64,000 nt of DNA from Macrostomum lignano (lineage: Eukaryota). Both the position numbers and the translations under genes were made by a program. This document shows, piece after piece, positions 14,640-58,482 of the stretch. Within the stretch, counting starts at the first letter, position 1. The number at the start of each line of letters is the position of its first letter. The DNA lies in assembly GCA_002269645.1 (NCBI GenBank), contig NIVC01000424.1, forward strand, positions 124,001-188,000, written 5' to 3'. The notes under the pieces are model-generated. The model saw only the letters and a list, made by a program, of their open reading frames with translations. It ran no database searches and had not been told where the DNA came from.

Positions 14640-14716
14640 ATACACACATACATACATAACATAGATACATACATACATACATACATACATACATACAGAC
14701 AGACAGACAGACAGAA

Positions 14717-14785
<69 letters not shown>

Positions 14786-15578
14786 GTCAGACAGACAGGA
14801 AGGGAGAGACCAGACAGGAAGGGAGAGACCAGACAGGAAGGGAGAGACCAGACAGCAAGGGAGAGACCAGACAGGGAGGGAGAGACCAGACAGGAAGGGA
14901 GAGACCAGACAGGGAGGGAGAGACCAGACAGGAAGGGAGAGACCAGACAGCAAGGGAGAGACCAGACAGCAAGGGAGAGACCAGACAGGAAGGGAGAGAC
15001 CAGACAGGAAGGGAGAGACCAGACAGGGAGGGAGAGACCAGACAGGAAGGGAGAGACCAGACAGGGAGGAAGAGACCAGACAGGGAGGAAGAGACCAGAC
15101 AGGGAGGAAGAGACCAGACAGGGAGGAAGAGACCAGACAGGGAGGAAGAGACCAGACAGGGAGGGAGAGACCAGACAGGGAGGAAGAGACCAGACAGGGA
15201 GGAAGAGACCAGACAGGGAGGAAGAGACCAGACAGGGAGGAAGAGACCAGACAGGGAGGAAGAGACCAGACAGGGAGGAAGAGACCAGACAGGGAGGAAG
15301 AGACCAGACAGGGAGGAAGAGACCAGACAGGGAGGAAGAGACCAGACAGGGAGGAAGAGACCAGACAGGGAGGAAGAGACCAGACAGGGAGGAAGAGACC
15401 AGACAGGGAGGAAGAGACCAGACAGGGAGGAAGAGACCAGACAGCAAGGGAGAGACCAAACAGGGAGGAAGAGACCAGACAGGGAGGAAGAGACCAGACA
15501 GGGAGGAAGAGACCAGACAGGGAGGAAGAGACCAGACAGGGAGGAAGAGACCAGACAGCAAGGGAGAGATCAGACAGG
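14640..15578. repeat. (TACA)n then (GACA)n, then a 19-bp minisatellite GAGACCAGACAGGGAGGAA, ~41 copies
   Basis: Direct reading. Confidence 0.95.
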
Positions 15579-16289
15579 AGCAGTAAAGGCAGACTTGCTC
15601 AACTCTTAAACCAATTCACTCACCGCTTGACAGACGGCAGACAAACTGGAAGCCACTTGCAGTTCTCCGAAGCAAAACAAGTCGATTAGCGATTCGCAGA
15701 GACAATCGGGAGATTTTTGTTGCTGCTAGCAGGATTTCGGAGGCGGAGCGGGGCTCTTAAAAAATCCCCAGAAGGGGGATGAGGAAGGAAAAGGAGGGGA
15801 GGCGGGGATCTCCCACCGGATTGGGGGAGAATGGCGGTGAGGAGGCTATCCGGGATTGGGCGCCAACCGGGGGCGGAGCGCAGAAGGGTGAGGAATTGAC
15901 TTAGAAGACGTTTTTAGGGGAGCAATTCCCGCGACCCCAATAATGGAGTGGCATTTTCAAGAAGGGTTTGAGGAAATTTGTTTTCCAGCTAATGGGGAGG
16001 CTGGTGATCGGAAGCTGCGACTGCTGCTTGCTCATTGGAGGAACTGCAGGGATCAGGGATTATAGAGATCTGGAAATGACACACAGCCAGTATTGCTTTT
16101 CAACTTCTATTCTGTCACCTGTTAGTCACGTCGCGTCTCTGTAACATAGCCAGGCATCGCGGTCTAACTTTTTGCCAGTGTTTTTCTTAGTTTTTTAAGT
16201 TACATATACTTGTACGTACCATCATATTCGTGTTGAAAATTGTAAAAGTAAGAATTCAATTTTTAATAGTCATCATGCCGTCTGGGAAG

Positions 16290-16534
16290 CCATGACTCCC
16301 GTAACAACTCATATGACCCCATGACTCCCACAACCCCATGACTCTCATGAACCCCCAATGACCGGATGACAACCATCCCATGACCCCTATGACCTTCATG
16401 ACCTTCATCACGGCTTGATGAATCTCATGATTCCCATGACCCTCGTGATCCCCATGACCCTCATGATCCCAATGACCCTCATGATCCCCATGACCCTCAT
16501 GATCCCCATGACCCTCATGATCCCCATGACCCTC
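16290..16534. repeat. Degenerate 18-bp repeat CATGATCCCCATGACCCT
   Basis: Direct reading. Confidence 0.85.
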
Positions 16535-16895
16535 AGTACGAGTATATTACGAGTATATGTACACGACGAAATTAGAAGTTTATACGAAGTGGCTATACTT
16601 TATAGATGATGTAATAATGCAATATTGCTATAAACTTGTTCAGTGTCTCTAAGTCTGTCAGCCAATCCAATTATCAAATATAGGAAGCTCGGCCCCTGAT
16701 GCTGGTATCATTATACCGACATACAGGTATGAACTATGAATTGAGTATGTCACGTGCTGCAGGAGCCCCTGGACAATGTTTTATCACTCAGGCCAATATG
16801 GCAAACAATTTAAGCTGTACAAAGGGCCTAGACAATTAGGATCTCCTTGTTGAAGGGGCACAATATCTTGAATTGAAGCCTCGGCAGAGTCCATA

Positions 16896-19440
16896 AAGGG
16901 GGCGCCATGGACAGCTGCTGATGAAGGGGGCGCCACAGCTACAGCTACTGATGAAGGGGGCGCCACAGCTACAGCTGCTGATGAAGGGGGCGCCACAGCT
17001 ACAGCTACTGATGAAGGGGGCGCCACAGCCACAGCTACTGATGAAGGGGGCGCCACAGCCACAGCTATACTGAAGGGGGCGCCATGCACAGCTGCTGATG
17101 AAGGGGGCGCCACAGCCACAGCTGCTGATGAAGGGGGCGCCACAGCTACAGCTACTGATGAAGGGGGCGCCACAGCTACAGCTACTGATGAAGGGGCGCC
17201 ACAGCCACAGCTACTGATGAAGGGGGCGCCACAGCTGCAGCTACTGATGAAGGGGGCTACAGCTACAGCTACTGATGAAGGGGGCGCCACAGCTACAGCT
17301 ACTGATGAAGGGGCGCCACAGCCACAGCTACTGATGAAGGGGGCGCCACAGCTGCAGCTACTGATGAAGGGGGCGCCACAGCTACAGCTACTGATGAAGG
17401 GAGCGCCACAGCCACAGCTATACTGATGAAGGGGGCGCCATGCACAGCTACTGATGAAGGGGGCGCCATGCACAGCTACTGAGATGAAGGGGGCGCCACA
17501 GCTACTGATGAAGGGGGCGCCACAGCCACAGCTACTGATGAAGGGGGCGCCATGCACAGCTGCTGATGAAGGGGGCGCCACAGCCACAGCTATACTGATG
17601 AAGGGGGCGCCATGCACAGCTACTGATGAAGGGGGCGCCACAGCCACTGATGAAGGGGGCGCCACAGCCACTGATGAAGGGGGCGCCACAGCTACTGATG
17701 AAGGGGGCGCCATGCACAGCTACTGATGAAGGGGGCGCCACAGCCACTGATGAAGGGGGCGCCACAGCTACTGATGAAGGGGGCGCCATGCACAGCTACT
17801 GATGAAGGGGCGCCACAGCCACAGCTACTGATGAAGGGGGCGCCACAGCCACAGCTACTGATGAAGGGGGCGCCACAGCCACAGCTACTGATGAAGGGGG
17901 TGCCACAGCCACAGCTACTGATGAAGGGGCGCCACAGCTACAGCTACTGATGAAAGGGGCGCCACAGCCACAGCTACTGATGAAGGGGGCGCCACAGCCA
18001 CAGCTATACTGATGAAGGGGGCGCCATGCACAGCTGCTGATGAAGGGGGCGCCACAGCTACAGCTACTGATGAAGGGGGCGCCACAGCTACAGCTACTGA
18101 TGAAGGGGGCGCCACAGCTACAGCTACTGATGAAGGGGCGCCACAGCTACAGCTACTGATGAAGGGGGCGCCACAGCTACAGCTACTGATGAAGGGGCGC
18201 CACAGCTACAGCTACTGATGAAGGGGGCGCCATGCACAGCTACTGATGAAGGGGGCGCCACAGCCACTGATGAAGGGGGCGCCACAGCTACTGATGAAGG
18301 GGGCGCCATGCACAGCTACTGATGAAGGGGCGCCACAGCTACAGCTACTGATGAAGGGGGCGCCATGCACAGCTACTGATGAAGGGGGCGCCACAGCCAC
18401 TGATGAAGGGGCGCCACAGCTACTGATGAAGGGGGCGCCATGCACAGCTACTGATGAAGGGGCGCCATGCACAGCTACTGATGAAGGGGGCGCCACAGCC
18501 ACTGATGAAGGGGGCGCCACAGCTACAGCTACTGATGAAGGGGGCGCCACAGCTACAGCTACTGATGAAGGGGCGCCACAGCCACAGCTACTGATGAAGG
18601 GGGCGCCACAGCTACAGCTACTGATGAAGGGGGCGCCACAGCTACAGCTACTGATGAAGGGAGCGCCACAGCCACAGCTATACTGATGAAGGGGGCGCCA
18701 TGCACAGCTACTGATGAAGGGGCGCCATGCACAGCTACTGATGAAGGGGGCGCCACAGCCACTGATGAAGGGGGCGCCACAGCTACTGATGAAGGGGGCG
18801 CCATGCACAGCTACTGATGAAGGGGCGCCACAGCCACAGCTACTGATGAAGGGGGCGCCACAGCTACAGCTACTGATGAAGGGGGCGCCACAGCCACAGC
18901 TACTGATGAAGGGGGCGCCACAGCCACAGCTATACTGAAGGGGGCGCCATGCACAGCTGCTGATGAAGGGGGCGCCACAGCTACAGCTACTGATGAAAGG
19001 GGCGCCACAGCTACAGCTACTGATGAAGGGGGCGCCATGCACAGCTACTGATGAAGGGGCGCCACAGCCACAGCTACTGATGAAGGGGGCGCCACAGCTA
19101 CAGCTACTGATGAAGGGGGCGCCACAGCCACAGCTACTGATGAAGGGGGCGCCACAGCCACAGCTATACTGAAGGGGGCGCCATGCACAGCTGCTGATGA
19201 AGGGGGCGCCACAGCTACAGCTACTGATGAAGGGGGCGCCACAGCTACAGCTACTGATGAAGGGGCGCCACAGCCACAGCTACTGATGAAGGGGGCGCCA
19301 CAGCTACAGCTACTGATGAAGGGGGCGCCACAGCTACAGCTACTGATGAAGGGAGCGCCACAGCCACAGCTATACTGATGAAGGGGGCGCCATGCACAGC
19401 TACTGATGAAGGGGCGCCATGACAGCTATTGATGAAGGGG
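16896..19440. repeat. Variable 24-32 bp minisatellite CTGATGAAGGGGGCGCCACAG(CTACAG)CTA
   Basis: Direct reading; modular variants and block duplications. Confidence 0.95.
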
Positions 19441-20381
19441 TTTTTGCCAGCCTATATTGCCCCCTGCCTATGCGTCTGTAACGGTGAAGCGCAGCAGCAA
19501 TAACTTAGAACTCACCCCCTTTGTCTGCAATTGAGCTGATACCTGATTGCAGGTAGACCAGACATACAGGCGTCCAGTCACGGTGCAGGTATTCTCAACA
19601 AGTGATGGAGTTATTTGTGACAGTCGACACCAGGGACAGCCTTGTGCAAGAATCTGGAAGCAGCTTCTTCCTAGTGATTGCCATGCCACAACACGTGCCT
19701 ACGTCAACAAGGCTCCACAAACTCTCCAGACGTCTCGTTCAAAAGGGTCTCCATGGCACACAGATTATGAACCTGATATTAGAAGCTAAGAGCCGCATTC
19801 AGCTATATAGCAGAAGTTTCTACAGAGCCTGCAACAAAAGCATTTTTTGTTTTTTTCGCTGCATCTGACAACAGCGCAACTCGGAAAAACTTACATGTAG
19901 CAGAGCAAAAAATCAACATTCGAGACTGGAGCAGCAGCAGAAGTGTCTTGCAGCAGTTTGTCAGCAAGCAGACAATCATGGAGCATGTTTTGAAGACTGC
20001 CTGACATCGGGCAGATTCACTGATGCAGATCTGTTTCACTCTTTATTTTACAGGCACCCCTATACAATATCTGCGTTTTTTCTCACCGTTACGCGCTGTT
20101 TCGCTTTCACAGCCAGTTGAGCAAAGTGAATTGAATTGACTTTGCGAGCAGGAGGGACGCTGTGCAGTGAGCTGCCGGAGGCTTGTGTCAAGTTTTGTTT
20201 TACTGCAGAGTGAAATATTTCTGAGAGAGAGCTGCAGGATTTTACCTGCTTTCGCTGGCGTTGTTCTGCTTGATTGAGTTTTGCTTGCGGCTGCTGCTGC
20301 TTCTAGGAGAAAAGGCTGGGGACAACAGTAAACTTTAAACTGCAAATACGCGGCTGTATTTTAACTCTTCAGAGTTATTTT

Positions 20382-20512
20382 CTGTCTGTCTGTCTTAGTG
20401 TTTGTCTGTCTGTCTGTCTGTCTGCCTGTCTATCTATCTATCTATCTGTCTGTCTGTCTGTCTATCTATCTTTCTGTCTGTCTGTTTGTCTGTCTGTCTA
20501 TCTATCTTTCTC

Positions 20513-20602
<90 letters not shown>

Positions 20603-20658
20603 CTTGTCTATCTATCTTTCTGTCTGTCTGTTTGTCTGTCTGTCTATCTATCTTTCTC

Positions 20659-20723
<65 letters not shown>

Positions 20724-20792
20724 GTCTGTCTGTCTGTCTGTCTGTCTGCTTGTCTATCTATCTATCTGTCTGTCTGTCTGTCTATCTATCTT

Positions 20793-20827
<35 letters not shown>

Positions 20828-20868
20828 TTCTGTCTGTCTGTTTGTCTGTCTGTCTATCTATCTTTCTC

Positions 20869-20965
<97 letters not shown>

Positions 20966-20966
20966 C

Positions 20967-21028
<62 letters not shown>

Positions 21029-21050
21029 AGTCAGTCAGTCAGTCAGTCAG
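20382..21050. repeat. (CTGT)n/(CTAT)n tetranucleotide tract
   Basis: Direct reading. Confidence 0.95.
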
Positions 21051-22189
21051 ATAAGAACCCAGTCAGCGAAAGCTGATCACAATCGAACAATCAGGGAAGT
21101 GAGTGGCACAGCACTGCAGCACAGCCATGATCAGTGAGCTGAACACAAACAGCCCTCGCATCAGTCTGCACACAGCATCTGAAGCATTTGCATAGCAAAA
21201 TTGGCACAATTTAGCCCAGTAAACAGATGGGTAGCTCACCGAATCTCAATTATTGTTGAAGTGTATTTGACTTCAATCTTCCTCAATAGCGGCTCACACC
21301 CCGATCCTCATCATCTCCTCATCCTGAATTCTCAGCTTCACTCCCTGATAGACTTCCCGGGCGCACTCAAGCGAATGTGAAGTGTAGCAAGAGGAAAGTC
21401 AATATAAAAAATTTCTATATACATGTGCGGGACACTTGTGCATTCCATCTTGGACTGGTGGGCTCTTGTCAAGAGCTCAAGTATACAAGGAATACTAAAA
21501 TTCAAACGTCCTTAGCTATAGAGTTCTGGAGTGGAAACTGTTGCAAATAAACTGTGCTAGGAGTAATACGCTTATACGTAGTTGGAGAATTAAGGCGGGA
21601 ATCTTCGGGGGAATTTAGGCATTAATTTTCAGAGGAATTTATTTGAGAATCATTCAGAGAGAATATAGTTTTCAAGCCAGTCAATTATAAATCTCGTTTA
21701 TAAGCCTGATTCACTCCAGAAAGTGGATGATTTGCACAAGCATTGCGTGGCCACTCAGGTTAATCCCCAAAGCCAGCCCGGGGTCACAAGACAATGGTCC
21801 CGGGGAGGAGAGACAAGGTTGAGAAGTGGGACACAGAAAGCGAGTTTGGAGAGGCCACTTAAAAGCAGAGAGGGCCACCTATCCGGCATATAAAACTGGC
21901 TAAGTGCTGGGCCATAAAAATCAGTTTATGGACAACAGAAGCTGCAGGGAGCTCGCAGTGAGAGAAAGCTTTGAGCAGAAAGAAGCAAAAACTTTTTGAG
22001 ATGAGCAAGAGTATAGCAATTTCTGCTCCATAGACTCCGAGTGCAAGGACTCTATTATAGAGACATGGATTGCAGCAATGATTGGCTGAAATTAATTATA
22101 TCTATACATAATTATCGATCACTTCAATCGATATTCAATCCAAACCCATGGATTAACCCAGACATCCAGGCGCTTTGATCGCAAGACAA

Positions 22190-22710
22190 ACATTTAGGTC
22201 TAATCAAATTAAGTTTTTATGAAATTTGTCATTAAATTTAGATCTTACGAATTTTAGGCCTTATGTGAAGCTTAGGTTTCATGAAAATTAGATCCCCTGA
22301 AATTTGGGTCTTTTGGAGTTTGGGTCCTTTGAAATTTAGGTCTTATGAAGCTTAGGTTTCATGAAAATTAGCTCCCCTGAAATTTAGGTCTTTTAGAGTT
22401 TGGGTCCTATGAAATTTAGGTCCTATGGAATTTAGGTCTAATGAAATTTAGGTCTGATAAAATTTAGGTCCTATGTAATTTAGTTCCTTTGAAATTTAGG
22501 TCTACTGAAGCTTAGGTTTCATGAAAATTAGATCCCCTGAAATTTAGGTCTTTTGGAGTTTGGGTCCTATGGAATTTAGGTCTAATGAAATTTAGGTCCT
22601 ATGGAATTTAGGTCCCATGAAATTTGGGTCTACTGAAATTAAGGTCTTTTGAAGTTTATGTCTAATGAAATTTAGATCTTATAGAATTTAGGTCTAATGA
22701 AATTAAGGCA
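22190..22710. repeat. Degenerate ~20-bp repeat with core GAAATTTAGGTC
   Basis: Direct reading. Confidence 0.85.
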
Positions 22711-23193
22711 GCCAGCTTCGCTGTTAAATGGTATTTAGAAATCCCAAAGCTCTGACATCAGCCATCCACCGCGGGATGCCTCTTGGCTACTGACTGAGAC
22801 ACCATAAAATCACGCAACCCGAGTGCCCCACATGCGAGCACCAAAAAACTTTTCAATCCTTGATCCCGGATCCTGCAGGAATCGTTGATTCTACCCAACG
22901 CAGGACAGACTCAAAAATACCCAAATTCAATTAGCTGAGAGCACTAGATTAACAATAATCTGTCCTGCTAATAGTAAGCATATATATATAATTATCCTAA
23001 ACAACAATAATCCCAAGTGGAAGCGGGAATAGAAGTCAAACCATATGAAATTATACGCGTTATATGCTTGCAGCACTCGGTAATATGAACATATAGATAT
23101 TTTTTAGATAACTGATTTCCTGTCGCGTGCTCATCCAGGACCTGACTTGACTGGCCACTTGAGACCGGCGAGGTATGGGGATTTCGATTTAAT

Positions 23194-24148
23194 CCACCCT
23201 CTGATCCTTTCCATTTACCCTCCGATCCTTCTTCCCATTTACCCTCCGACCTTCATTTACCCTCCGATCCTTCTTCCCATTTACCCTCCGAGTCTTCTTC
23301 CCATTTACCCTCTGATCCTTCTTCCCATTTACCCTCTGACCTTCATTTACCCTCCAATCCTTCTTCCCATTTACCTTCCGATCCTTCTTCCCATTTACCC
23401 TCCAAGCCTTCTTCCCATTTACCCTCCGATCCTTTTTCCCATTTATTTACCCTCTGATCCTTCTTCCCATTTACCCTCCGATCCTTCCTCCCATTTACCC
23501 TCCAAGCCTTCTTCCCATTTAGCCTCCGATCCTTCTTCCCATTCATTTACCCTCCGATCATTCTTCCCATTTACCCTCCAATCCTTCTTCCCATTTACCC
23601 TCCAATCCTTCTTCCCATTCATTTACCCTCCGAGCCTTCTTCCCATTCATTTACCCTCCGAGCCTTCTTCCCATTCATTTACCCTCCGAGCCTTCTTCCC
23701 ATTTACCCTCCAATCCTTCTTCCCATTTACCCTCCAATCCTTCTTCCCATTTACCCTCCGAGCCTTCTTCCCATTTACCCTCCGATCCTTCTTCCCATTT
23801 ACCCTCAGATCCTTCTTTCCATTTACCCTCCGAGCTTTCTTCCCATTTAGCCTCCGATCCTTCTTTCCATTTACCCTCCGAGCTTTCTTCCCATTTAGCC
23901 TCCGATTCTTCTTCCCATTTACCCTCCGAGCCTTCTTCCCATTTAGCCTCCAATACTTCTTCCCATTTACCCTCCGAGCCTTCTTCCCATTTACCCTCCG
24001 ATCCTTCTTCCCATTTAGCCTCCAATACTTCTTCCCATTTAGCCTCCAATAATTCTTCCCATTTAGCCTCCGATCCTTCTTTCCATTTACCCTCCGAGCT
24101 TTCTTCCCATTTAGCCTCCGATCCTTCTTCCCATTTACCCTCCGAGCC
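23194..24148. repeat. 24-bp minisatellite CCATTTACCCTCCGATCCTTCTTC, ~40 copies
   Basis: Direct reading. Confidence 0.95.
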
Positions 24149-24788
24149 TATGTCCCAATTACCCGGTTTACCATATCAAAAAACGTCAATTTTCAGTGGA
24201 ACAATACTGGTTGATATTCGAATGGATTTCCTCAGGTAGGTTTGCAAAGACAAGTATAATTATGAAAACAAACAACAAATCATACTACTTAACACAGCGT
24301 AGAGAATGACATCAAAAGGCAAAACAAAAGCCGCATAGCTATATATATGCAACTCATGGAAAGATTTTTTTTTAATTTGAAAGTCGCTTCTCAAATTAAG
24401 CTTCTCACATCTCCAAACATGCTACTGAAGATAGAAACACGGGAGCATGATCAATTTAGTTTTAAATATTATAAGTTAGATACTCGATGAAAGCAAAACA
24501 ATTATAAACTAATCATATACTTTGAAGTTCTCTTTATTTAGCTCTATTAAAGGAGTGATGTAAAATTAGGAGGACTTATACTTATACTACTAATTAGCAT
24601 AAGTAGTACTTACTTTTTATTGATTCGAATTTCGAATATTTTATATTTCTAACTTAAATTGGACAAGTAGATAACTCTTAAGAGAACTGATAGATGTTAA
24701 TTCATACTTAATGCTTCAATATTCAATATTGTAAAGAATTAATGGGTCGATTGAGTCCACTTAGCAAGCGGACCAAGTCAAGCACAAT

Positions 24789-24992
24789 TCAACTATCATA
24801 AATAATATCGTAATGGCCAGGCCGGTACAGCAGGGTGAGCACAGGAACAGACTCGCCGTCATCCGGGAACGTGTGCCGACTGATCCCGGCGCCATCGCGG
24901 TGCATGTACTCAACCGCGATGCAGGTCTCCAGGGTTTGGGTCAGAGCGATTATGTGAATATGATCGGATTCGTGACGCATTGGCTCCACTTC
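24789..24992 (-). CDS. OTUB1: otubain exon 2
   Basis: Acceptor ccccgcag|GAA at 24993/24992; EVEPMRHESDHIHIIAL...LLYRPGHYDIIY with the catalytic His. The spliced product is 271 aa. Confidence 0.95.
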   Translation of the reverse strand, partial: EVEPMRHESDHIHIIALTQTLETCIAVEYMHRDGAGISRHTFPDDGESVPVLTLLYRPGHYDIIYDS

Positions 24993-25137
24993 CTGCGGGG
25001 ATTCGAGTTCGAGTTGGCAGGGTAAGAGACGATGAGCTGCGCTTTGAAGGCGGGCGATAAAATTAGGCGACTGACAATACCACAAAATCATTCATTAGAA
25101 CCGACATTCTTAAGCATCCATTCTTAAAGATTCACAC

Positions 25138-26762
25138 AAAACCGACATTCCTAAAGACCCACCAAAGCCGACATTCTCAAAGACAAATCAAAACCCGACA
25201 TTCTCAAGGATCCTACAAAACCGACATTCTCGAGGATCCATCAAAACCCGACATTCTCGAGGATCCATCAAAACCGACATTCCCAAAATCCCTATCAAAA
25301 CCGACATTCCTAAAATCCCCATCAAAACCGATATTCTCAAAGACCTAACAATACCGACATTCTCAAGGATCCATCAAAACCGACATTCTCGAGGATCCAT
25401 CAAAACCGACATTCTCAAGGATCCATCAAAACCGACATTCCAAGGATCCATCAAAACGCGACATTCTCAAGGATCCATCAAAACCCGACATTCTCAAGGA
25501 TCCATCAAAACCGACATTCTCAAGGATCCATCAAAACCGACATTCCTAAAATCCCCATCAAAACCGACATTCCTAAAATCCCCATCAAAACCGACATTCT
25601 CAAAGACCCAACAATACCGACATTCTCAAGGATCCATCAAAACCGACATTCTCGAGGATCCATCAAAACCGACATTCTCAAGGATCCATCAAAACCGACA
25701 TTCCAAGGATCCATCAAAACGCGACATTCTCAAGGATCCATCAAAACCCGACATTCTCAAGGATCCATCAAAACCGACATTCTCAAGGATCCATCAAAAC
25801 CGACATTCCTAAAATCCCCATCAAAACCGACATTCCTAAAATCCCCATCAAAACCGACATTCTCAAAGACCCAACAATACCGACATTCTCAAGGATCCAT
25901 CAAAACCGACATTCTCGAGGATCCATCAAAACCGACATTCTCAAGGATCCATCAAAACCGACATTCCTAAAATCCCCATCAAAACCGACATTCTCGAAGA
26001 CCCAACAATACCGACATTCTCAAGGATCCTACAAAACCGACATTCTCGAGGATCCATCAAAACCCGACATTCTCGAGGATCCATCAAAACCGACAATCTC
26101 AAAATCTCTATCAAAACCGACATTCCTAAAATCCCCATCAAAACCGACATTCTCAAAGACCCATCAAAACCGACATTCTCAAGGATCCATCAAAACCGAC
26201 ATTCTCAAGGATTCATCAAAACCGACATTCTCAAGGATCCATCAAAACCGACATTCTCAAGGATCCATCAAAACTGGCATTCCCAAAAATCCCCATCAAA
26301 ACCGAAATTGTCAAAAATCCCCATCAAAACCGACATTCTCAAAGACCTAACAATACCGACATTCTCAAGGATCCATCAAAATCGACATTCTCGAAGGATC
26401 CATCAAAACCGACATTCCTAAAATCCCCATCAAAACCGACATTCTCAAAGACCCAACAATACCGACATTCTCAAGGATCCTACAAAACCGACATTCTCGA
26501 GGATCCATCAAAACCCGACATTCTCAAGGATCCATCAAAACCGACATTCCTAAAATCCCCATCAAAACCGACATTCCTAAAATCCCCATCAAAACCGACA
26601 TTCTCAAAGACCCAACAATACCGACATTCTCAAGGATCCATCAAAACCGACATTCTCAAGGATCCATCAAAACCGACATTCTCAAGGATCCTCCAAAACC
26701 GACATTCTCAAGGATCCTTCGAAACCGACATTCCAAGGATCCTTCAAAACCGACATTCTCGA
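25138..26762. repeat. 26-bp minisatellite AAAACCGACATTCTCAAGGATCCATC, ~62 copies (OTUB1 intron)
   Basis: Direct reading; starts about 25 bp from the donor. Confidence 0.95.
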
Positions 26763-26788
26763 CGATCCTCCACCACTAAACCACTAAC

Positions 26789-27400
26789 CGTAGCACAGAA
26801 GTCTTTAATAGTTTGCTCTCCGTCCAGAAAGCTCTGAAAGAAGTCGGCATGTGTCTGCAAATGACCGCTGACTAGTAAGCGCAAGAACACAACAACATAA
26901 TCGCTTTGACCGGGATTGTTAAACACGGACTCCAAATTGGCAGTAGAGCATTCTCGCCTCTCAACAGTCTCAACTAGTTCGGAGAAAGCGTCGTAAAAGT
27001 CGTCAACCGTAACGGATGAATAGCCCAACTCTATAATGGCGTCTTTTCTTTGTCGACAGATTTCTTTAAGTTTGGCAGCAGCTTCTGGCGGCTGTTGAAG
27101 CAGCTGGTCCAGATAAGCGAATCCGAAGCCTCGATAAAAACAGTTGCCATCGCCTCGGGTTCGTCTCAGACGAGGATACCGAGCGCATAGTTGCTCGCAT
27201 TTGGCTAAGAATACGGGGTCGTCTGTGTACTCTTGCTTCAGGTTGCTAGTTGGTATAGCTGGCGTGATGAGGGCCTGAGCCATGGCTATCTCATTCTCAA
27301 TGTCCTGCTGCTGTTTCTGATAGGCCTCGTACAAACTGCCTGGATCTGCTGAGGAATTCTCCTCCGATTGTGGAGGCTTCTGTTCTGCCTGTTCGGACAT
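26789..27400 (-). CDS. OTUB1: otubain (OTU deubiquitinase) exon 1
   Basis: ATG at 27400; RRTRGDGNCFYRGFGF catalytic Asp/Cys motif; DYVVVFLRLL; phase-0 donor ACG|gttagt at 26789/26788; 204 codons. Confidence 0.95.
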
Positions 27401-29039
27401 TACCGCTGAATATAGCTACTGTCAGTAACAAGTTGAGTAAACAATCTTTAATTATGCTCATGCAATATAAAAGTAATTTATTTTGTTTAATAGTTAGTTT
27501 GTAATCTCGATTGCACAAAAAGCAGTAAATTGTTGTTGCCAAACCACTTGAGACGAGGAGAGAGTAAGAGAGAAGAGATCTCAGAAGGCATAAACCTTAA
27601 GAAAGCTTGGATTGCAATTGTGAAGTTTCAAAGGACCCAAAGGTTAGATAGACAGGCTTTGTAGGCTGTCTGTGGCCTGTGGGTTGAAGTTTACTGACCC
27701 CCGACTTAGAGTGCAGTGTTAGGCCAGTTTATTAGTAACTAAATTGATCACAATTGTGACTATGATTATATGAATTCGTGACCTTATTCATCATTGTGAT
27801 TTCCTAGAGCTTGTTTAAAAGGTTGTGAATGAGGGTTTGCTTTTTTTATTTCTTCCACTTAGAATTTGATCTACCACTTCTATCATAGCAAACACAGATA
27901 ATAAAGCATGTACAATGATAGAACTACTATCATAGCAAAATTGCAGCTTTTAAAGTTTTGTAACTTTTGCATTAAGTCTGGGGATATAACTTTCCCAATT
28001 TTTATTACCTTAGAAAACATTTTCTAGCTAGATAAAGCATAAACAATGATAGATTATTTTTGAAAAATACAAGTTTTTCCTTTCATTAAATTTCTACCTT
28101 GGACTATACTGAATTAGGCTCTTAAGCCTAATAACTTTTTGACCCCTATTTGAGTCACTAAAATCTTGTCTTTCATAGCTTAAATCTAAAATATTAAGAA
28201 TTAGAGAATTTAAACCATTAAATTTGAGCTCCTATTGCAGCTAAGGTCTGAACTGCACTGGATGCCCTCCTTTGTCATGCTAAATCATGTCAGTGCTAGA
28301 CCCCAATTGCACTGCCAAGGGCCAATCTGTGCTAGACATTGTAAACAATATGAACCATTGGCTGCAATAGAGACATAAGTTTATTTATTTTTTGAGATTT
28401 TAAATAGCTAAAAAATCACTTTAAAGATTTATTATTTGATTGTTTAAAAGCTAGCACAATCTAAGTGGAAACAAATCCAGGCCATTTGCATATGGAATAT
28501 AAGATATAATATAATAATAGCTTTTATATATAAGAAATCTAATTAATAGTAATATGTTTTTTAATTAATAAATTAATTATTAACTATGTTTTTTACTTGA
28601 TTATATCCTGTTTAAAGCTCCTAATAATGGGATAAATAAAGTCCCACTTCAATGAGACCATGCTGCTAAGCTGCCATTATAATAGCAGGCTATGCAGTCA
28701 TAAGAACTTTTTGCTTGTCTAGACCAGCTGGTTCTAAAAATGCTGAACTTTCCACCTAGACCTAGGGCAGTCACCCAGCAGTCTTGGGACAGCAGAACCA
28801 AGCTGAACATGGTGTACTTCACTGATAGCTATGTTAAATGGCATGGAAGCCTTTCTAATATAGCAATTACAAAATTGTATAGTTGGCCTATTGGCTATAT
28901 CTTTTGCATATTCTTAATCTTATGTAGCAAAGCCATTAAACAGCTACTATAGAACAATTAGCTTTAGTCTACTAGATATTTTTTAAGTAAATCTTAAGTA
29001 GATTTTATAAATTCTACAGCATTCTATTAAACAGGATAC

Positions 29040-29812
29040 AAAAATGCAAGCCCAGCTCTATACAATGACTAGTGCCACAAAGGAGCTGGCTGGTTTCACA
29101 AGAACCCATGGGTTGTTGCATATCTTCCTGTCCAGATGCACAGCTTAATGGCTTTTTTGGCTGGTTCTATTTGTAACTACCTTGATTGGCTTGATTGGCT
29201 TGATTGGCTGCACCATCCACTTGACCAAGTTGTTGCAGAAGTTCACCAAGCACTCTATTGAGTTGCAGCTGAAGTTGAAAAGCAAATGAGCCCAGTCTAG
29301 ATTATAATAGGTTGCAGGTTATAATCTGCAACTTCAAGCCTGCTTCTATATCCTTGACTCTATATGATGATTATCATGATTACTTGAAAACTATTGAGGA
29401 AACTTTGACAACTGGTTCAAATAGGACACCAAAAAGTGCCTGCAAGAATTGGATAAAAGCTACTAACCCAAATCAACTTAAGAAGATATGCAAGCTCCTA
29501 GATGTGATATAGGTGTTGGATAACACCATAGATATCTCCCACCTCAACAAGACCATGCTGCTAAGCTGCCACTATAGTAGCAAGCTATGCAGTCACAAGA
29601 ACTTGTTGCTTGTCTAAACTAGCCAGTTCTAAAACTGCTACATATTCACCTGGACCCAGGACAGTTGTCCAATGGTCCTAGGGACAAGACAGCCAAGAGC
29701 TAGACATGGTGCTTTTTACTAGTGGCTACTTTGAATGGCACAGAAGCCTTTCTGATATAGCAATTAGTGGGCCCATTAGCTAAATCTCTTACATATTTTT
29801 ATGTAACAAAGC
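29040..29812 (+). pseudogene. Decayed coding-like sequence of unknown family within the CpG-free tract
   Basis: Protein-like stretches (DQVVAEVHQALY*VAAEVEKQM; DYHDYLKTIEETL...KKICKLLDVI*VLDN) broken by TGA and TAG stops that could derive from CGA and CAG. Confidence 0.3.
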
Positions 29813-30019
29813 AACCAACTAGGTAGCTGCTATATAACCTATATTTATTTTTGTGCAATAGGAATGCTATATAATATTGTGACTTTCCAAACTGCATCCT
29901 TAAATTGGACCTTGGATGCAATTTTATATCTTAGTACTACCAAAGAACCCAGTGCAAAAAAATTTGCCTCAGTCTATTGTATGGCGCATTTTCTTTTACA
30001 AGTCAAAAAGCTACCTAAT

Positions 30020-33000
30020 GAATCAGACTAGGTTTGTAGACATGGTCTCAAGCATATTTCTAAAGACTTTAAGACAAGATAACTGTATTGATTCTGGCTA
30101 AAAATAAGCTTGCACCTAGCTAGTACAAATCAACTAGTACCTATAGCTATTCCATTTGCCACTGACAAGGAGAAAGGTTATGAAACTGATTCTTCAGTTC
30201 CAAATATCAACGAGGAATCAAGAGACAAAGATCTAGGTACCATTGCTATAGAACAAGGTCTAAACCAAGAGCATATGGCTATGTTGCCCTGTCATAGCAC
30301 CTATACATGCTATGCACTTGATCACTTTTTACTTTGATTGACTTATAGACAATTCTTGACCCTATTGGAATAAATTCTTAGTGTTTAGCATAACACAACA
30401 CACTTTGTATACTATTTGTATACTGCAATCTAGGGGGCAAATGGGTAAATAGCAAGAGTAACTATGAATAAGTTACTTTATCAGCTAATATTTAATAGTT
30501 TAATCCTATACAATTTGTCTGATTTTTATTAAACAAATGATAGTAGGCCTATTGACAATGATCAACTTGCCTAAGACCTCTTATAAGTTAAGAGTCTTAA
30601 GTTTTTTAATTTAGCTAGGCCTAATAAGCAGCTTATTATTTTCACTTAGTAGAAATTTACAAACGTAAAAAATATTAAACTTTGCATATCTTCTCACCTT
30701 GGCCTGCAGACTAACTATTATTAAAATGTTTTTTGAACTAAAATTGCTATGAAAAATTGGTAGCTTTTCAAGACTATGAAGATGATAAAAGCCTTCTGCA
30801 ATTTGGTGTAGGGCCTAGCTAGAAGGATAACATAAGTTATGTTTGTTACAGGTCCTCCAATATGCTATTACTTTTATGTGCCACTTTTCCAACATATGCT
30901 ACTTTTTGGAGTGCTGCCCCTTAGCCCATCTGGTATATCATCTTTTAACCCTTTTCAAGGCTTTTGGTATACCATGCTACATTAGAAAGGTGCACTTTTT
31001 GAAGTATACTAGATAGCCACCTATAAAATGTCAATTCTTCCTAAAAGGATTCTTGAGATAAACAAAAACTATTTTACTTAATTATGTAGGCCTACTCAAT
31101 ATAGGCCTAATACTCTGGCATAGGCCTTAGTCATTTCCAATAGTTTAAACAGTTTTTTCTATGATTGTTATTAATGTCTATGCATGAATATTGGCCCTAT
31201 GCCTTTTGTTCCATAAAAAGGACATAATATATTTTATATATACATTAGAGCTCAACCTAGAGCTTTAATGCATTAGGGGGCCTATTGTTTTTCTGTCTTT
31301 GTTATATATTATATGGCTTAAGCTTTGTTCAACTTTTATTCTGTAATTTTTTTGTAAGTCTATAACATTATATTCTTTCTTTTGCAAAGCTTCTTTTTTA
31401 ATTTCATTCTACTTTTCCCTTAAGACCCTACCTATAGTATTGCTACATGCTCAAGATTTCTATTGTAACTATCAAATACAAATGATAACCTTGTATTGCT
31501 TATCACTATAATCATATCAAAAAGCGAAGGCCTAGGCCTATTAAAAGCAACTTGGTTAGGCCCTAGCCATGTTGTCTAAAATGATTTAAAGATGCTTTTT
31601 CTAAATAGAATTTGACAAATATTTGATAATAATAATTATCATCTATAATTTGATTGAATATATATAGATGCTATCTTCAAAGCGTTAAGGTATAAAAAGT
31701 AGGCCTAGGCCTAGTAAGCTAGCTAAGCCTAAGCCACAGCTATTGCATGGCACATCTACAGACTGCACTGCTGCACACAGCTGTTTCTGTTTAGTCCAAG
31801 AACTGGAGGCGGGGGTCGACACACATCCTTAATTACCCCAGCTAATGCTGGTAGCTACCCATTTGATAGCTGTGTCGGTGTCGTCGGTAAACTGAAGCAA
31901 TGCAACTCAGACAGAGTTAGGCCCTACCTAGGTCCTAAGTGTCTTGCTCAAGGACACAAATTGTTCCAGTGGGATCGGGAATTGAACCCCACTTTGAATC
32001 ATAAAGGCATCATCATTTAATTCTCAAATAGAGGCTTATTATTAATAAATGAACCCTGCAAAGCTCATCAGTCATCAGTCATCACTCATCAGCAAACGAG
32101 ACGAGCCATTGACTAAGTCATTGAAGTGCCCGCAGGCCGCAGTTGGGTGGATAGTTAGATGATGATCTTGGATTTCTAACAGCAAATTTTATAGATAGTC
32201 ATCAATAGTCAATAGGCATGCCAAACCCCCCACGATGTGAATCTATCCAACTCAGGACTAGGCACTTAGCACAATTAGCCCGTTAGCCGCGGCTGTTTAA
32301 AACGTCGTCGGTTGAAAAACCGTTTAAATATGGTTCGCAAAAATGACAAAATCGCAAGCGAAACTCCTTCAAACACCTCAAAAAGCAATGCTTACTTAAT
32401 TTATTTAAATAAAGAGTAAGTGAGTACTTTTAGCTTACATTGCATAATAAAATTTTTGAAGTAGTTTATTAGACTAGTGCACCTTTTGGCGCAAATTTGA
32501 ACTGAAATTTTGATTAACACAGGTATTAATTTATATGGAATCTGGATGGATTGATCGTCACAACATCCTTAGACAGCTGATTTTTTTGTTTTTTAACAAC
32601 TATTTCGCAAATTTATTACAAAACCCTACCCGAGGCTATATAGTCGAGGCGATTAATTTTGAGTTGACAGCTGACAGCATGTACACTGTACACATATACA
32701 CGTCACACAGCTAGCTGCTGCAGCTGCAGCAATACTAGCCCACCTACTCATCAGCAAAAGTGCACTTGCTGTAGAAAAAATTCACTGAAGACAGAGTAAA
32801 ATAACTGTGATAACGGACTAGCTATATTAGTGCCTTTTAATTAAATCTCGTCGAACTGTCAAAGCCAATAACATGTACATGCACATGTACTGATGTACTT
32901 ACATGTACATCAGTGCATGTAAGCTGGAACCAAAAGCTTTAATGACACTCAACCACCAGGCTGCGTTAGACACCGATCTGCATGTGTCGAACTTCAACAA

Positions 33001-33025
33001 ATTTCCGATTCTGGTCCGGCTTACT
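30020..33025. repeat. 3,006-bp direct duplication, copy 1
   Basis: gaatcagactagg...ctggtccggcttact recurs at a constant offset of 5479 at both ends. Spot checks were identical, including the duplicated 75-aa ORF at 30110 and 35589. Confidence 0.95.
31840..32010 (-). mobile_element. tRNA-derived SINE remnant (CORE/MIR-like central domain)
   Basis: Minus strand reads gggttcaattcccg (B box), then tgtgtccttgagcaagacacttag and aaatgggtagc, segments typical of conserved-domain SINEs. Confidence 0.55.
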
Positions 33026-35498
33026 TACTTACTTACTACTGACGGGGGGCGCAGGCGCCGCGAATAGGCCGCGAGGCCCCTATCGCAACCCCAAGGTAAA
33101 AGAGCACAAGGATTAGCCTTGGGGGTGCGCCCAGTCCCCGCCAGTAGTCGGCAGGTCCGCAGTGGAGGCATCGGCGACCCTCATCCGGCCGGAGTCCCGG
33201 ACGAAGGCGCGGAGGTCTCGGATATTGTCCGCGGTGGTCAGCTCGTCCATCCGCTGGGGGTGGCCGAGGTATTTGTGCCGCGCCTTGTTGAAGTAAGGGC
33301 AGAAGGTGACGTGATGCTCCGCGGTCTCCTCTCCTATGCCACAGAAGGGACAGGTGGGAGGGCAACCGGTTTGCAACGATATATGTCTCTGGAAGAATCC
33401 GTGGCCGGTTAGGACCATGCACATCTCCCTGAGGTCGGTTCTGTTAAGCGAAATCAGATAATCAGAGACTTTCCTGTTCAGGTTAGGCATGGCAGAGCGG
33501 CTCTGCCTGTACTCGGTGCAGCTGTTCCAGTGGAGCTGGTGCTGCTGATGGAGCCACCTGTTGATATGGCGGGTGACTTGCGACCTGGGGGTGGGTAGCC
33601 TCATCAGACGGTGGTTGCCGTCTGGGTTGCTGCCCTCCTTGGCGAGAGAGTCCGCGAGCTCGTTGCCCAGGATGTTGCTGTGACCAGGTGTCCAGATAAT
33701 TCTAATCCTGTTAAGGACTGAGAGAGATTGCACACTGCGGTGGCATTGAGATACTGTAGCAGCGGAGATATTCTCAGTGGTTAAGGCCTTAATAGCAGCT
33801 TGGCTATCAGTGTAGAAATTAATGTCAAAATTATTAATGTTCGCCTGAAACAGTTGCTGGGCACACTGCTCAATGGCGCAAATTTCAGCTTGGAAAACTG
33901 AGGTGTTCTCACCGAGGTGCAGACTTTCCTGGAGAAGCATCTTACCCTCGTGGAAAATGGCAATACCCGCTCCAGCGCGGCCGTTGAACAGCGAGCCGTC
34001 GGTGAAGCAGTGAATGCCCTGGCTGCGCCGGTTCACACCGACATCCAGCGGAATGTTGTCTCGGCCAGGGATGGCGGTCTTGAAGCCCCTCCTGATGTTG
34101 AGGGCGGGAGGTCGACTATCCACATTGCCCAGGTCCATGTGGATGTTGTTAAGGTCGCGGCGGACAAAGTCCATATGCGGGATTAATGTTTTCATTGGCA
34201 TAAAGCCAGAGGGCGCGTTATTTAACGTTTTATCTCTGATAAGCCGGGAGGCAGACTTCATAGCCTCCGCCCTAATAAATAGGTGAAGCGGAGGTAGGTT
34301 AAGGATAGTGTTCAGCCCCTCGTAAGGGGTGGACGGGTACGCACCTGTGATGGCACGGCAAATGCTGCCCTGAAGCTGGTACAGCCGCTGACGGGCGGCC
34401 TTCTGCTCCAGCACGCTAGTCCAGATGAGACTCGCGTATGTGATACTGGGCCGGATGATGCCGGTATAAATCCAACGGACCGTTCTAGGCGAGAGGCCCC
34501 AAGTCGGCCCGATGGCTCTGCGCAGCTGGGCAAAGCAGCGTTTTGCCCGACCGATGACGTTATCAAGGTGCTTCGTCCAGCGCAGGTCATGCGTTAGCGT
34601 CACACCGAGGTATTTGACCTCCTTCTTGAAGGGGATGTTTCTGCCATAGACAGTGAGGTTTTTCATCTCCCATTTACGGCGCTTGGTGAAAACGACAGCG
34701 ACAGTCTTAGTGACGCTGATTTTTAGGCCATGCTGTGTAGCCCAGTCGGCCGCCTTGTCGGCGAATTGCTGCATCAGGTTGCGCAGAGTGGCGGGGTCGT
34801 GTCCGCTGACGACCGCGGCAACGTCATCGGCGTAGCCCGCCCTGGTGATACTGCTGGGAATGTCAGCGGTTAGAAGTTCGTCCATGACGAGATTCCAGAG
34901 AAGTGGAGTTAGCACGCCACCTTGCGGGCCGCCTTTCATCACCGCCCGGGTGAGGGTAACGCCCATAAGTGTGGATGTCACAAACCTTTTGCGGATCATA
35001 AAATAAATCCAGCGAACAATGCTGTGTCTTACATTCCTGCGGGAAAGAGAATTTCTGAAGGAGCGGAAGAGGACATTGTCAAATGCTCCTTCGAAGTCAA
35101 CGAACAACCCGCAAGCGAGTTGTTTGCTAAGGATGGCACTCTCAATTTTGGAGGTAATGGCGTGGAGAGCATGCTCAGTCGTCCTCCCAGGCTGGAAGGC
35201 GTACTGGTACTTACTGACAGGGTCGGAGCGCAGGTCGCACTCTCGAAGCCTCCACAGGATGAGCCTCTCCATCAGCTTAACACAAAAGGAAGTGAGGCTG
35301 ATGGGCCGGAAGGATTTCACGTTGGTGTAGTCACCCTTAGCAGGTTTCGGGATGAACACGACTCTGGACATTCTCCAGATTGTGGGAATGTAACCTGTGG
35401 TATAACAGTCAACAAGCAATTTAGAGAAAGAATCAGCAAAGTTTTGCAGCTTTAGCGCCTCCTGCAGGATACAGGGGGCGATATTGTCAGGGCCAGAC
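33026..35498 (-). mobile_element. 5'-truncated non-LTR retrotransposon with RT, RNase H and Zn knuckle (I/R1/LOA-like group), ending in a (TAAG)n tail
   Basis: Begins at SSGPDNI (the GPDG motif at the start of RT); contains [31 protein letters not shown], RNase H FTDGS...FQAEICAI...TDSQAA...WTPGH...GNELAD and CPFCG...[10 protein letters not shown]. Short 3' UTR, then gtagtaagtaagtaagtaag. Much more GC- and CpG-rich than its flanks. Confidence 0.95.
33113..35419 (-). CDS. ORF2 remnant of the retrotransposon (RT-RNase H-CCHC), uninterrupted
   Basis: 768-aa ORF in the track. The frame stays open upstream to the 5' junction at about 35500. No APE endonuclease domain is present. Confidence 0.9.
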
Positions 35499-38400
35499 GA
35501 ATCAGACTAGGTTTGTAGACATGGTCTCAAGCATATTTCTAAAGACTTTAAGACAAGATAACTGTATTGATTCTGGCTAAAAATAAGCTTGCACCTAGCT
35601 AGTACAAATCAACTAGTACCTATAGCTATTCCATTTGCCACTGACAAGGAGAAAGGTTATGAAACTGATTCTTCAGTTCCAAATATCAACGAGGAATCAA
35701 GAGACAAAGATCTAGGTACCATTGCTATAGAACAAGGTCTAAACCAAGAGCATATGGCTATGTTGCCCTGTCATAGCACCTATACATGCTATGCACTTGA
35801 TCACTTTTTACTTTGATTGACTTATAGACAATTCTTGACCCTATTGGAATAAATTCTTAGTGTTTAGCATAACACAACACACTTTGTATACTATTTGTAT
35901 ACTGCAATCTAGGGGGCAAATGGGTAAATAGCAAGAGTAACTATGAATAAGTTACTTTATCAGCTAATATTTAATAGTTTAATCCTATACAATTTGTCTG
36001 ATTTTTATTAAACAAATGATAGTAGGCCTATTGACAATGATCAACTTGCCTAAGACCTCTTATAAGTTAAGAGTCTTAAGTTTTTTAATTTAGCTAGGCC
36101 TAATAAGCAGCTTATTATTTTCACTTAGTAGAAATTTACAAACGTAAAAAATATTAAACTTTGCATATCTTCTCACCTTGGCCTGCAGACTAACTATTAT
36201 TAAAATGTTTTTTGAACTAAAATTGCTATGAAAAATTGGTAGCTTTTCAAGACTATGAAGATGATAAAAGCCTTCTGCAATTTGGTGTAGGGCCTAGCTA
36301 GAAGGATAACATAAGTTATGTTTGTTACAGGTCCTCCAATATGCTATTACTTTTATGTGCCACTTTTCCAACATATGCTACTTTTTGGAGTGCTGCCCCT
36401 TAGCCCATCTGGTATATCATCTTTTAACCCTTTTCAAGGCTTTTGGTATACCATGCTACATTAGAAAGGTGCACTTTTTGAAGTATACTAGATAGCCACC
36501 TATAAAATGTCAATTCTTCCTAAAAGGATTCTTGAGATAAACAAAAACTATTTTACTTAATTATGTAGGCCTACTCAATATAGGCCTAATACTCTGGCAT
36601 AGGCCTTAGTCATTTCCAATAGTTTAAACAGTTTTTTCTATGATTGTTATTAATGTCTATGCATGAATATTGGCCCTATGCCTTTTGTTCCATAAAAAGG
36701 ACATAATATATTTTATATATACATTAGAGCTCAACCTAGAGCTTTAATGCATTAGGGGGCCTATTGTTTTTCTGTCTTTGTTATATATTATATGGCTTAA
36801 GCTTTGTTCAACTTTTATTCTGTAATTTTTTTGTAAGTCTATAACATTATATTCTTTCTTTTGCAAAGCTTCTTTTTTAATTTCATTCTACTTTTCCCTT
36901 AAGACCCTACCTATAGTATTGCTACATGCTCAAGATTTCTATTGTAACTATCAAATACAAATGATAACCTTGTATTGCTTATCACTATAATCATATCAAA
37001 AAGCGAAGGCCTAGGCCTATTAAAAGCAACTTGGTTAGGCCCTAGCCATGTTGTCTAAAATGATTTAAAGATGCTTTTTCTAAATAGAATTTGACAAATA
37101 TTTGATAATAATAATTATCATCTATAATTTGATTGAATATATATAGATGCTATCTTCAAAGCGTTAAGGTATAAAAAGTAGGCCTAGGCCTAGTAAGCTA
37201 GCTAAGCCTAAGCCACAGCTATTGCATGGCACATCTACAGACTGCACTGCTGCACACAGCTGTTTCTGTTTAGTCCAAGAACTGGAGGCGGGGGTCGACA
37301 CACATCCTTAATTACCCCAGCTAATGCTGGTAGCTACCCATTTGATAGCTGTGTCGGTGTCGTCGGTAAACTGAAGCAATGCAACTCAGACAGAGTTAGG
37401 CCCTACCTAGGTCCTAAGTGTCTTGCTCAAGGACACAAATTGTTCCAGTGGGATCGGGAATTGAACCCCACTTTGAATCATAAAGGCATCATCATTTAAT
37501 TCTCAAATAGAGGCTTATTATTAATAAATGAACCCTGCAAAGCTCATCAGTCATCAGTCATCACTCATCAGCAAACGAGACGAGCCATTGACTAAGTCAT
37601 TGAAGTGCCCGCAGGCCGCAGTTGGGTGGATAGTTAGATGATGATCTTGGATTTCTAACAGCAAATTTTATAGATAGTCATCAATAGTCAATAGGCATGC
37701 CAAACCCCCCACGATGTGAATCTATCCAACTCAGGACTAGGCACTTAGCACAATTAGCCCGTTAGCCGCGGCTGTTTAAAACGTCGTCGGTTGAAAAACC
37801 GTTTAAATATGGTTCGCAAAAATGACAAAATCGCAAGCGAAACTCCTTCAAACACCTCAAAAAGCAATGCTTACTTAATTTATTTAAATAAAGAGTAAGT
37901 GAGTACTTTTAGCTTACATTGCATAATAAAATTTTTGAAGTAGTTTATTAGACTAGTGCACCTTTTGGCGCAAATTTGAACTGAAATTTTGATTAACACA
38001 GGTATTAATTTATATGGAATCTGGATGGATTGATCGTCACAACATCCTTAGACAGCTGATTTTTTTGTTTTTTAACAACTATTTCGCAAATTTATTACAA
38101 AACCCTACCCGAGGCTATATAGTCGAGGCGATTAATTTTGAGTTGACAGCTGACAGCATGTACACTGTACACATATACACGTCACACAGCTAGCTGCTGC
38201 AGCTGCAGCAATACTAGCCCACCTACTCATCAGCAAAAGTGCACTTGCTGTAGAAAAAATTCACTGAAGACAGAGTAAAATAACTGTGATAACGGACTAG
38301 CTATATTAGTGCCTTTTAATTAAATCTCGTCGAACTGTCAAAGCCAATAACATGTACATGCACATGTACTGATGTACTTACATGTACATCAGTGCATGTA

Positions 38401-38504
38401 AGCTGGAACCAAAAGCTTTAATGACACTCAACCACCAGGCTGCGTTAGACACCGATCTGCATGTGTCGAACTTCAACAAATTTCCGATTCTGGTCCGGCT
38501 TACT
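35499..38504. repeat. 3,006-bp direct duplication, copy 2
   Basis: Same sequence as 30020-33025; abuts the 5' truncation point of the LINE. Confidence 0.95.
37319..37489 (-). mobile_element. Second copy of the SINE remnant, inside the duplication
   Basis: Identical sequence at offset +5479. Confidence 0.55.
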
Positions 38505-55120: not shown

Positions 55121-55134
55121 GTGAGTAGTGATGG

Positions 55135-58362: not shown

Positions 58363-58482
58363 TTGACAATCGAAGTGTCTGAAGCGCCTGAGGATGAGGA
58401 GCATATGAAAAAGTCAGGCCCATAAAATTGTTCAAAAGAAACTCAACACCACAAAAATCCGTCACACCGCCTTCATGCGCAG

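Follow-up and report, generated by a model that had tools for sequence, protein, structure and literature searches.

Loss of CpG across an intergenic block of Macrostomum lignano and the old direct repeat inside it: a probable product of methylation-linked decay rather than repeat-induced point mutation

Several described processes resemble the mutational pattern considered here. Repeat-induced point mutation (RIP), as described in Neurospora and other ascomycetes, changes C to T and G to A in both copies of a duplication and leaves an AT-rich product; it is fungal, RID-dependent and repeat-limited, it prefers CpA, with the result that CpA/TpG is depleted and TpA enriched, and nearly all of its changes are transitions. 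To our knowledge, RIP and the RID enzyme are known only from fungi, and among the papers listed by our literature search, the RIP studies were all fungal. In basidiomycetes, another hypermutation of transposons is targeted at CpG (TpCpG in Microbotryum; PMC5381629). The decay of methylated CpG to TpG or CpA is known from vertebrate Alu and L1 elements and from transposon-methylating invertebrates, and AID/APOBEC enzymes edit retroelements in the TpC context. In this study, we performed a computational analysis of a 64-kb stretch (hereafter the window) of contig NIVC01000424.1, assembly GCA_002269645.1, from the free-living flatworm Macrostomum lignano, in which a diverged direct repeat lies within a 3.75-kb intergenic block upstream of an otubain gene. 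The block has lost almost all of its CpGs, in unique DNA as well as in the repeat. Our analyses suggested that the repeat represents an old local duplication in a germline-methylated domain, where CpG was lost by deamination of 5-methylcytosine (5mC) and not by RIP, and we put the probability of this reading at about 0.7.

The features that carry the argument are given below in window coordinates.

27778-31524, no strand: CpG-erased intergenic block, 3,747 bp, GC content 0.34, with sharp edges; 3 CpGs against 105.8 expected.
Within the block, left of copy A: unique DNA; 0 CpG against 17.9 expected.
28642-28955, forward strand: repeat copy A, 314 bp (blastn self-comparison, MAFFT); 0 CpG against 12.6 expected.
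28956-29536, no strand: unique spacer of 581 bp between copies A and B; 0 CpG against 20.4 expected.
29537-29838, forward strand: repeat copy B, 302 bp (blastn self-comparison, MAFFT); 0 CpG against 13.6 expected.
Within the block, right of copy B: unique DNA; 3 CpGs against 42.9 expected.
35499-37003, no strand: duplicate of the block's right part with the same sequence as 30020-31524, contained in a 3,006-bp perfect duplication.

The original prediction, made from the letters of the window, had described 28642-28933 and 29537-29812 as a direct repeat whose differences are mostly transitions, with reciprocal TG/CA pairs that mark ancestral CpGs hit separately in the two copies, as C>T on one strand or the other; this much was borne out. 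Comparison of the window with itself by blastn aligned 28642-28916 with 29537-29801 at 75.2% identity over 278 columns (E 2e-47), and a more sensitive blastn extended the match to 28642-28955 and 29537-29838 (73.5% over 317 columns, E 4e-53), the two copies lying in the same orientation and 895 bp apart. No third copy was found in the 64-kb window by sensitive blastn or with an nhmmer profile, copies A and B were the sole pair found in a sensitive self-comparison of 27400-33025, and no similarity was found between the spacer and the DNA after copy B. The MAFFT core of 295 columns held 218 matches, 22 gap columns and 55 mismatches, the last comprising 44 transitions and 11 transversions. Each of the dinucleotide pairs quoted in the prediction is present, namely TG/CA at 28653-4 versus 29548-9, 28729-30 versus 29624-5 and 28844-5 versus 29741-2, and TA versus TG or CA at 28701, 28758, 28763 and 28857.

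The locus is found in three genomic copies, the window and two further loci (L002 and L003) that each carry both repeat copies, and the state of A and B was rebuilt as the majority across the three. A 12-bp stretch found in copy B of both L002 and L003 is missing from copy B of the window. Rebuilt A and B were 78.8% identical over 306 aligned sites and differed by 50 transitions and 15 transversions (23% transversions). The excess of transitions was higher than among polarised changes in the unique DNA of the flanks (42:39; Fisher P = 0.002). The C/G-bearing state at these transitions was split 24:26 between the copies. Reciprocal CA|TG dinucleotides were seen five times against 0.93 expected under independent transitions (P = 0.003), and the other classes of adjacent double transition reached at most two each. 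Five such pairs imply about 10 ancestral CpGs in the 306-bp unit, which is a normal density for the M. lignano genome, and they are direct evidence that the two copies lost all of these CpGs separately once the duplication had taken place. None was kept in either copy. Non-CpG sites differ by about 14% between the copies, or about 7% per lineage, and the total loss at CpG therefore means that CpG decay was faster by at least an order of magnitude, which is the range for methylated CpGs in vertebrates. The suggested test, whether a reconstructed ancestor regains an open reading frame (ORF) or a database match, was negative: with C/G restored at every transition, the 320-nt ancestor (GC 0.48, 8 CpGs) had six stops in each frame listed and a longest open stretch of 67 aa, and its two longest peptides gave no Pfam match.

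Loss of CpG is not limited to the repeat. The whole block has an observed-to-expected ratio (o/e) for CpG of 0.03 (Poisson P ~3e-42) and extends beyond the pair by 860 bp on its left and 1.7 kb on its right, and its unique DNA is as empty as copies A and B. The edges are set by the last CpG common to all three genomic copies, at 27777, and by position 31525, where CpGs start again. Unique DNA outside the block has a CpG o/e of about 0.5-1.0, and, tandem arrays apart, the window has no long CpG-free run other than those in the block or in its duplicate. TpG and CpA, the products of CpG decay, are kept, with an o/e of 1.19 and 1.07, respectively; that of TpC is 0.67. The block is non-coding. A Pfam search of the six-frame translation of 27450-31650 (with X at stops) detected no coding remnant, organellar and viral proteins included, Rfam gave chance-level matches only over 27400-33100, far below gathering scores and with no tRNA-like family, and no signatures of long terminal repeats (LTRs) or terminal inverted repeats were seen at the repeat ends or block ends.

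These figures bear directly on the claim that the locus carries the RIP signature, that is, a homology-triggered C>T hypermutation of duplicated DNA in which the copies were mutated as repeats. The transition excess between the copies (44:11 and 50:15) and the AT-rich block with its TpA/ApT ratio of 1.09 do resemble RIP, as does the presence of C>T/G>A changes in both copies. However, unique DNA shows the same observed/expected CpG counts (0/17.9, 0/20.4 and 3/42.9) as the copies (0/12.6 and 0/13.6), and a RIP-like process is already contradicted by this independence of CpG loss from repeats. In addition, RIP is recognised by a substrate index, (CpA+TpG)/(ApC+GpT), below about 1.03 and a composite RIP index above 0, whereas the block gives 1.43 and -0.34, the preferred RIP substrate CpA/TpG being kept while CpG is gone. 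The claim was therefore not sustained in a flatworm host. The basidiomycete hypermutation resembles the pattern seen here in that CpG, not CpA, is erased, but it is fungal, has been described for multicopy transposons and has a trinucleotide preference for which no CpGs survive here to compare.

The three genomic copies date the erasure. L002 (NIVC01000106.1) and L003 (NIVC01000423.1) encode P0062, a near-identical paralogue of the otubain protein, and are colinear with the window from gene through block to right flank, at 91-96% identity to the window by blastn with indels counted and about 95-100% with substitutions only; they are paralogous or allelic. The block contains 3, 2 and 2 CpGs in the three copies (o/e 0.02-0.03) and the right flank has an o/e of 0.63-0.68. 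No block CpG is common to all three, so the few that are present are young, and since the CpG-free block itself is common to all three, the erasure predates their split. It thus took place after the duplication and before the three genomic copies separated. Divergence between the window and L002 is very uneven: left of the gene, some unique stretches (15579-16895, 19441-20380) are 99.8-100% identical, and the block and right flank (29889-32748) are about 95.7% identical (substitutions only). This suggests gene conversion, or a constraint or mutation rate that varies strongly along the region.

Mutation contexts were compared at two levels. Between the rebuilt copies, C/T differences occurred before a conserved A at 16 of 84 sites (19%), before C at 4 of 27 (15%) and before T at 13 of 73 (18%), and were thus no commoner before A than before C or T (17/100; P = 0.85). 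The proposed context distribution pointing to CpA is not seen at this level, and without a before-A excess the TA versus TG/CA pairs are a product of the ordinary transition-rich divergence of 21%. For recent changes, singleton differences among the three genomic copies were assigned to one lineage under a strict filter that required more than 5 columns to the nearest gap and more than 3 to the nearest other difference, with control segments lying within 14309-33025. The block had 92 such events at 2,332 sites (3.95%) and the pooled controls had 81 at 5,596; the singleton substitution rate was 1.1-2.9% in the flanks. The ratio of transitions to transversions was 61:31 in the block and 42:39 in the pooled controls.

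Among these polarised changes, C>T in the block affected 21 of 332 CpA sites (6.3%), 2 of 161 CpC sites (1.2%) and 10 of 345 CpT sites (2.9%), an enrichment at CpA over CpC and CpT together (12/506) with an odds ratio of 2.8 (P = 0.006); a looser filter gave the same direction (36/450 at CpA, P = 0.003). The controls had 8/838 at CpA (0.95%) and 14/1243 at CpC and CpT, and no CpA enrichment was seen in controls or flanks. The CpA share of non-CpG C>T changes was 21/33 in the block versus 8/22 in all controls (P = 0.058) and 3/14 in the right flank alone (P = 0.011). TCA was the most mutable trinucleotide of the block (TCA>TTA, 10/80). A 5' T was favoured in C>T changes of the block (14/217) and also in controls (15/709 versus 14/1722 for other 5' bases), and may reflect a general TpC bias of the M. 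lignano germ-line mutation spectrum. In copy B of L002, a former CpG that had become CA has now turned into TA. We regard the modest, block-specific CpA>TpA excess as suggestive, not strong; the second hits at CpA that had been proposed find partial support in these recent changes but none between copies A and B, and not as RIP. Recent changes in the block run both ways, with 33 C>T and 28 T>C. In the controls, C>T at CpG (7/350, 2.0%) did not differ significantly from that at other C sites (22/2081, 1.06%), so that flanking CpGs have no significant excess mutability; CpG sites within the block are too few for such a count. T>C at TpG, the change that creates CpG, was almost absent (1/313 in the block, 0/813 in controls) next to 2-3% for other T>C contexts in the block, a scarcity seen also where CpGs are not hypermutable.

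We propose that the two segments of about 310 bp are what is left of an old duplication that arose locally in non-coding DNA, and that the 3.75-kb intergenic domain upstream of otubain may have long been CpG-methylated in the germ line. Deamination of 5mC would then convert CpG to TpG when the top strand is hit and to CpA when the bottom strand is hit; independent decay in each copy would yield reciprocal TG/CA pairs, and the same process would empty the whole domain of CpG, in unique DNA too. The other differences could stem from ordinary substitution in a neutral, AT-rich region that has more transitions than its flanks, and the TA versus TG/CA pairs would belong to this transition background. 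We infer methylation as the cause from published work, which reports that M. lignano has kept DNMT1 and DNMT3 and that its 5mC level is low (PMC11292947, PMC9246332, PMC10658182, citing Wasik et al. 2015); one of these sources, a review, describes the genomic methylation pattern of free-living flatworms as unknown (PMC9246332). The mild CpA>TpA excess may come from spill-over (non-CpG) methylation or another domain-specific deamination.

The pattern agrees with methylation-linked decay elsewhere in that CpG is depleted with TpG and CpA retained, paralogous copies show reciprocal TG/CA pairs, transitions are in excess, the whole domain is affected regardless of copy number, and the host is reported to possess DNMT1 and DNMT3. 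Several points nevertheless weigh against it. First, the reported genome-wide 5mC is low and most of the window has a CpG o/e near 1, so an erasure to 0.03 needs very focal and long-lasting methylation. Second, no transposon protein remnant, RNA family or terminal repeats were found in the block that could explain such targeting. Third, strict CpG methylation does not predict the CpA>TpA excess of the block, with TCA as its top class. In addition, the block differs from the vertebrate and invertebrate examples in lying in a low-5mC genome whose bulk CpG o/e is near 1, in its extreme depletion, and in forming a sharp-edged 3.7-kb intergenic patch beside a housekeeping gene body that is undepleted; the methylation here is, moreover, deduced.

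We regard the block as a fresh instance of a known process, to which the species and the focal, complete erasure add interest; it does not reveal RIP in an animal. A sharply bounded erased patch next to an undepleted housekeeping gene, preserved in three genomic copies, is an evolutionary footprint, and it suggests that long-term germ-line methylation in M. lignano is focal and aimed at particular non-genic DNA, not at gene bodies. The block offers a concrete locus for methylome work in a regeneration model, and the three-copy structure allowed mutations to be polarised without an outgroup species.

It is doubtful, though worth keeping in view, that copies A and B are the LTRs of a small, decayed LTR element, or that one short interspersed element (SINE) inserted twice, an origin that would leave the mutational reading unchanged. 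Their shared orientation, their length of about 310 bp each and the 581-bp interior would fit, and transposon-derived DNA would explain why the domain was methylated. However, the copies end in TC...AC and not in TG...CA, and no target-site duplication, primer-binding site or polypurine tract was seen; the DNA before copy B is not purine-rich. All of this is weak evidence, as a divergence of about 21% blurs the ends. Neither a tRNA-like nor any other RNA family was detected, no further copy was found in the window or in 43 kb of the paralogous loci beyond the same position, and the CpG-free block extends well past the pair on both sides.

A domain-specific deamination beyond CpG methylation, either AID/APOBEC-like or associated with single strands in transcription or replication and preferring CpG and TpCpA, is improbable. 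It could account for C>T at CpA of 6.3% in the block versus 0.95% in controls, for TCA>TTA as top trinucleotide class, for the TpC o/e of 0.67, and for the raised singleton rate of the block, and in its most mutable trinucleotide and under-represented TpC the block does resemble retroelements edited by AID/APOBEC. Yet the numbers are small (21 events), the 5' T preference is present in the controls too and so may belong to the general spectrum of the species, and CpA/TpG is at or above expectation while CpG is gone, which makes the dominant process CpG-specific by more than an order of magnitude. Besides, the even split of the C/G state between the copies and a GC content of 0.34 near the transition equilibrium calculated from polarised rates do not favour it, and the block differs from edited retroelements in having no one-strand clustering and in the dominance of CpG loss.

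Quite improbable, in our judgement, is a focal genome-defence process in M. lignano that would mark particular intergenic or repeat-derived domains and raise cytosine hypermutation there far above the level elsewhere in the genome, combining complete CpG erasure with a component at CpA, especially TCA, as a methylation-linked animal counterpart of RIP or of methylation induced premeiotically (MIP) that is not triggered by homology. We consider it very improbable that the block never had many CpGs, whether because it came in as foreign or organellar DNA or because selection acted against CpG, and that it bears no mutational footprint. That no source element has been identified and that the block is AT-rich and non-coding would suit such an origin, but the CA|TG pairs indicate about 10 CpGs in the 306-bp unit at the time of duplication that were later lost in both copies, six frames hold no organellar or viral protein remnant, and the block keeps its synteny across the three genomic copies; for the repeat itself this explanation is largely refuted. 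Finally, a RIP-like process is hardly credible, even with polarised CpA>TpA enriched in the block (21/332 versus 12/506, P = 0.006), as the host is a flatworm and not a fungus (RID itself was not searched for), YpA is not in excess between the copies (P = 0.85), 15 of 65 differences are transversions, recent changes run in both directions, unique DNA is equally hit, CpA/TpG is kept, and such mutation is absent from nearby repeats, namely the 3,006-bp repeat that is still 100% identical and a 306-bp tandem pair of about 93% identity in L002 and L003, as well as from the three copies of the CpG-normal flanks.

The other features of the locus are as follows.

26744-27400, reverse strand: first coding exon of otubain (OTUB1-like), Pfam Peptidase_C65, 100% identical to M. 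lignano BOX15_Mlig001358g4.
30020-33025, forward strand: first arm of the 3,006-bp perfect direct duplication (blastn self-comparison), with the second arm at 35499-38504.
33026-35498, reverse strand: 5'-truncated non-LTR retrotransposon with a 768-aa ORF (33113-35419) carrying reverse transcriptase and RNase H domains.
58428-59471, forward strand: forkhead-domain exon (domain search).

The otubain exon has normal CpG, and the erased block starts about 380 bp upstream of this first exon and its start codon. On the other side, a gene with FERM and RING (zf-C3HC4_3) domains, placed according to the gene called on L003 and lying in the window from about 39700 onward on the reverse strand, points its 3' end at the block, which makes the block intergenic between this gene and otubain. 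The forkhead exon is consistent with a flatworm, non-fungal host.

The 3,006-bp duplication flanks the retrotransposon (30020-38504 in all), which is young and lies outside the CpG-erased block, with a CpG o/e of 0.84; its 3' tail, at the 33026 end, is of the (TACT)n type. L003 has an empty site (~4165), without retrotransposon and without duplication. L002 (1-4360) holds a longer element of this family, inserted independently, that is 99.6% identical, encodes a 1,003-aa ORF, lies 277 bp away and has a normal 13-bp target-site duplication. Both insertions are at ...TACT targets that match the (TACT)n-type tail. The 3,006-bp duplication could have arisen as a target-site duplication of unusual length; otherwise it is an artefact of the assembly. 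Its left end (30020) falls within a 306-bp segment (29889-30194) that forms the tandem pair in L002 and L003, which is older than the split of these two loci. The single copy in the window looks like a recombinant of the pair, one unit probably having been lost by unequal crossing-over. Insertion, duplication and loss of the tandem unit are all younger than the CpG erasure, and their only bearing on it is that perfect repeats stand here unmutated.

Minisatellite arrays with units of 11-34 bp make up about 35% of the window, for example at 7696-9210, 16896-19440, 25137-26768 and 55132-57078, and an intron of otubain holds a 1.6-kb array of 26-bp units. CpG counts in these arrays are not independent events, as variant units can be amplified as blocks, and they were not used as a control. 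In the arrays at 16896-19440, 25137-26768 and 55132-57078, CpG transition variants relative to the unit consensus make up at most about 4% of CpG positions. The variability of CpG positions differs sharply by array: some have changes in fewer than 1% of their units, others in 16-37%, and in some arrays CpG is the most variable position.

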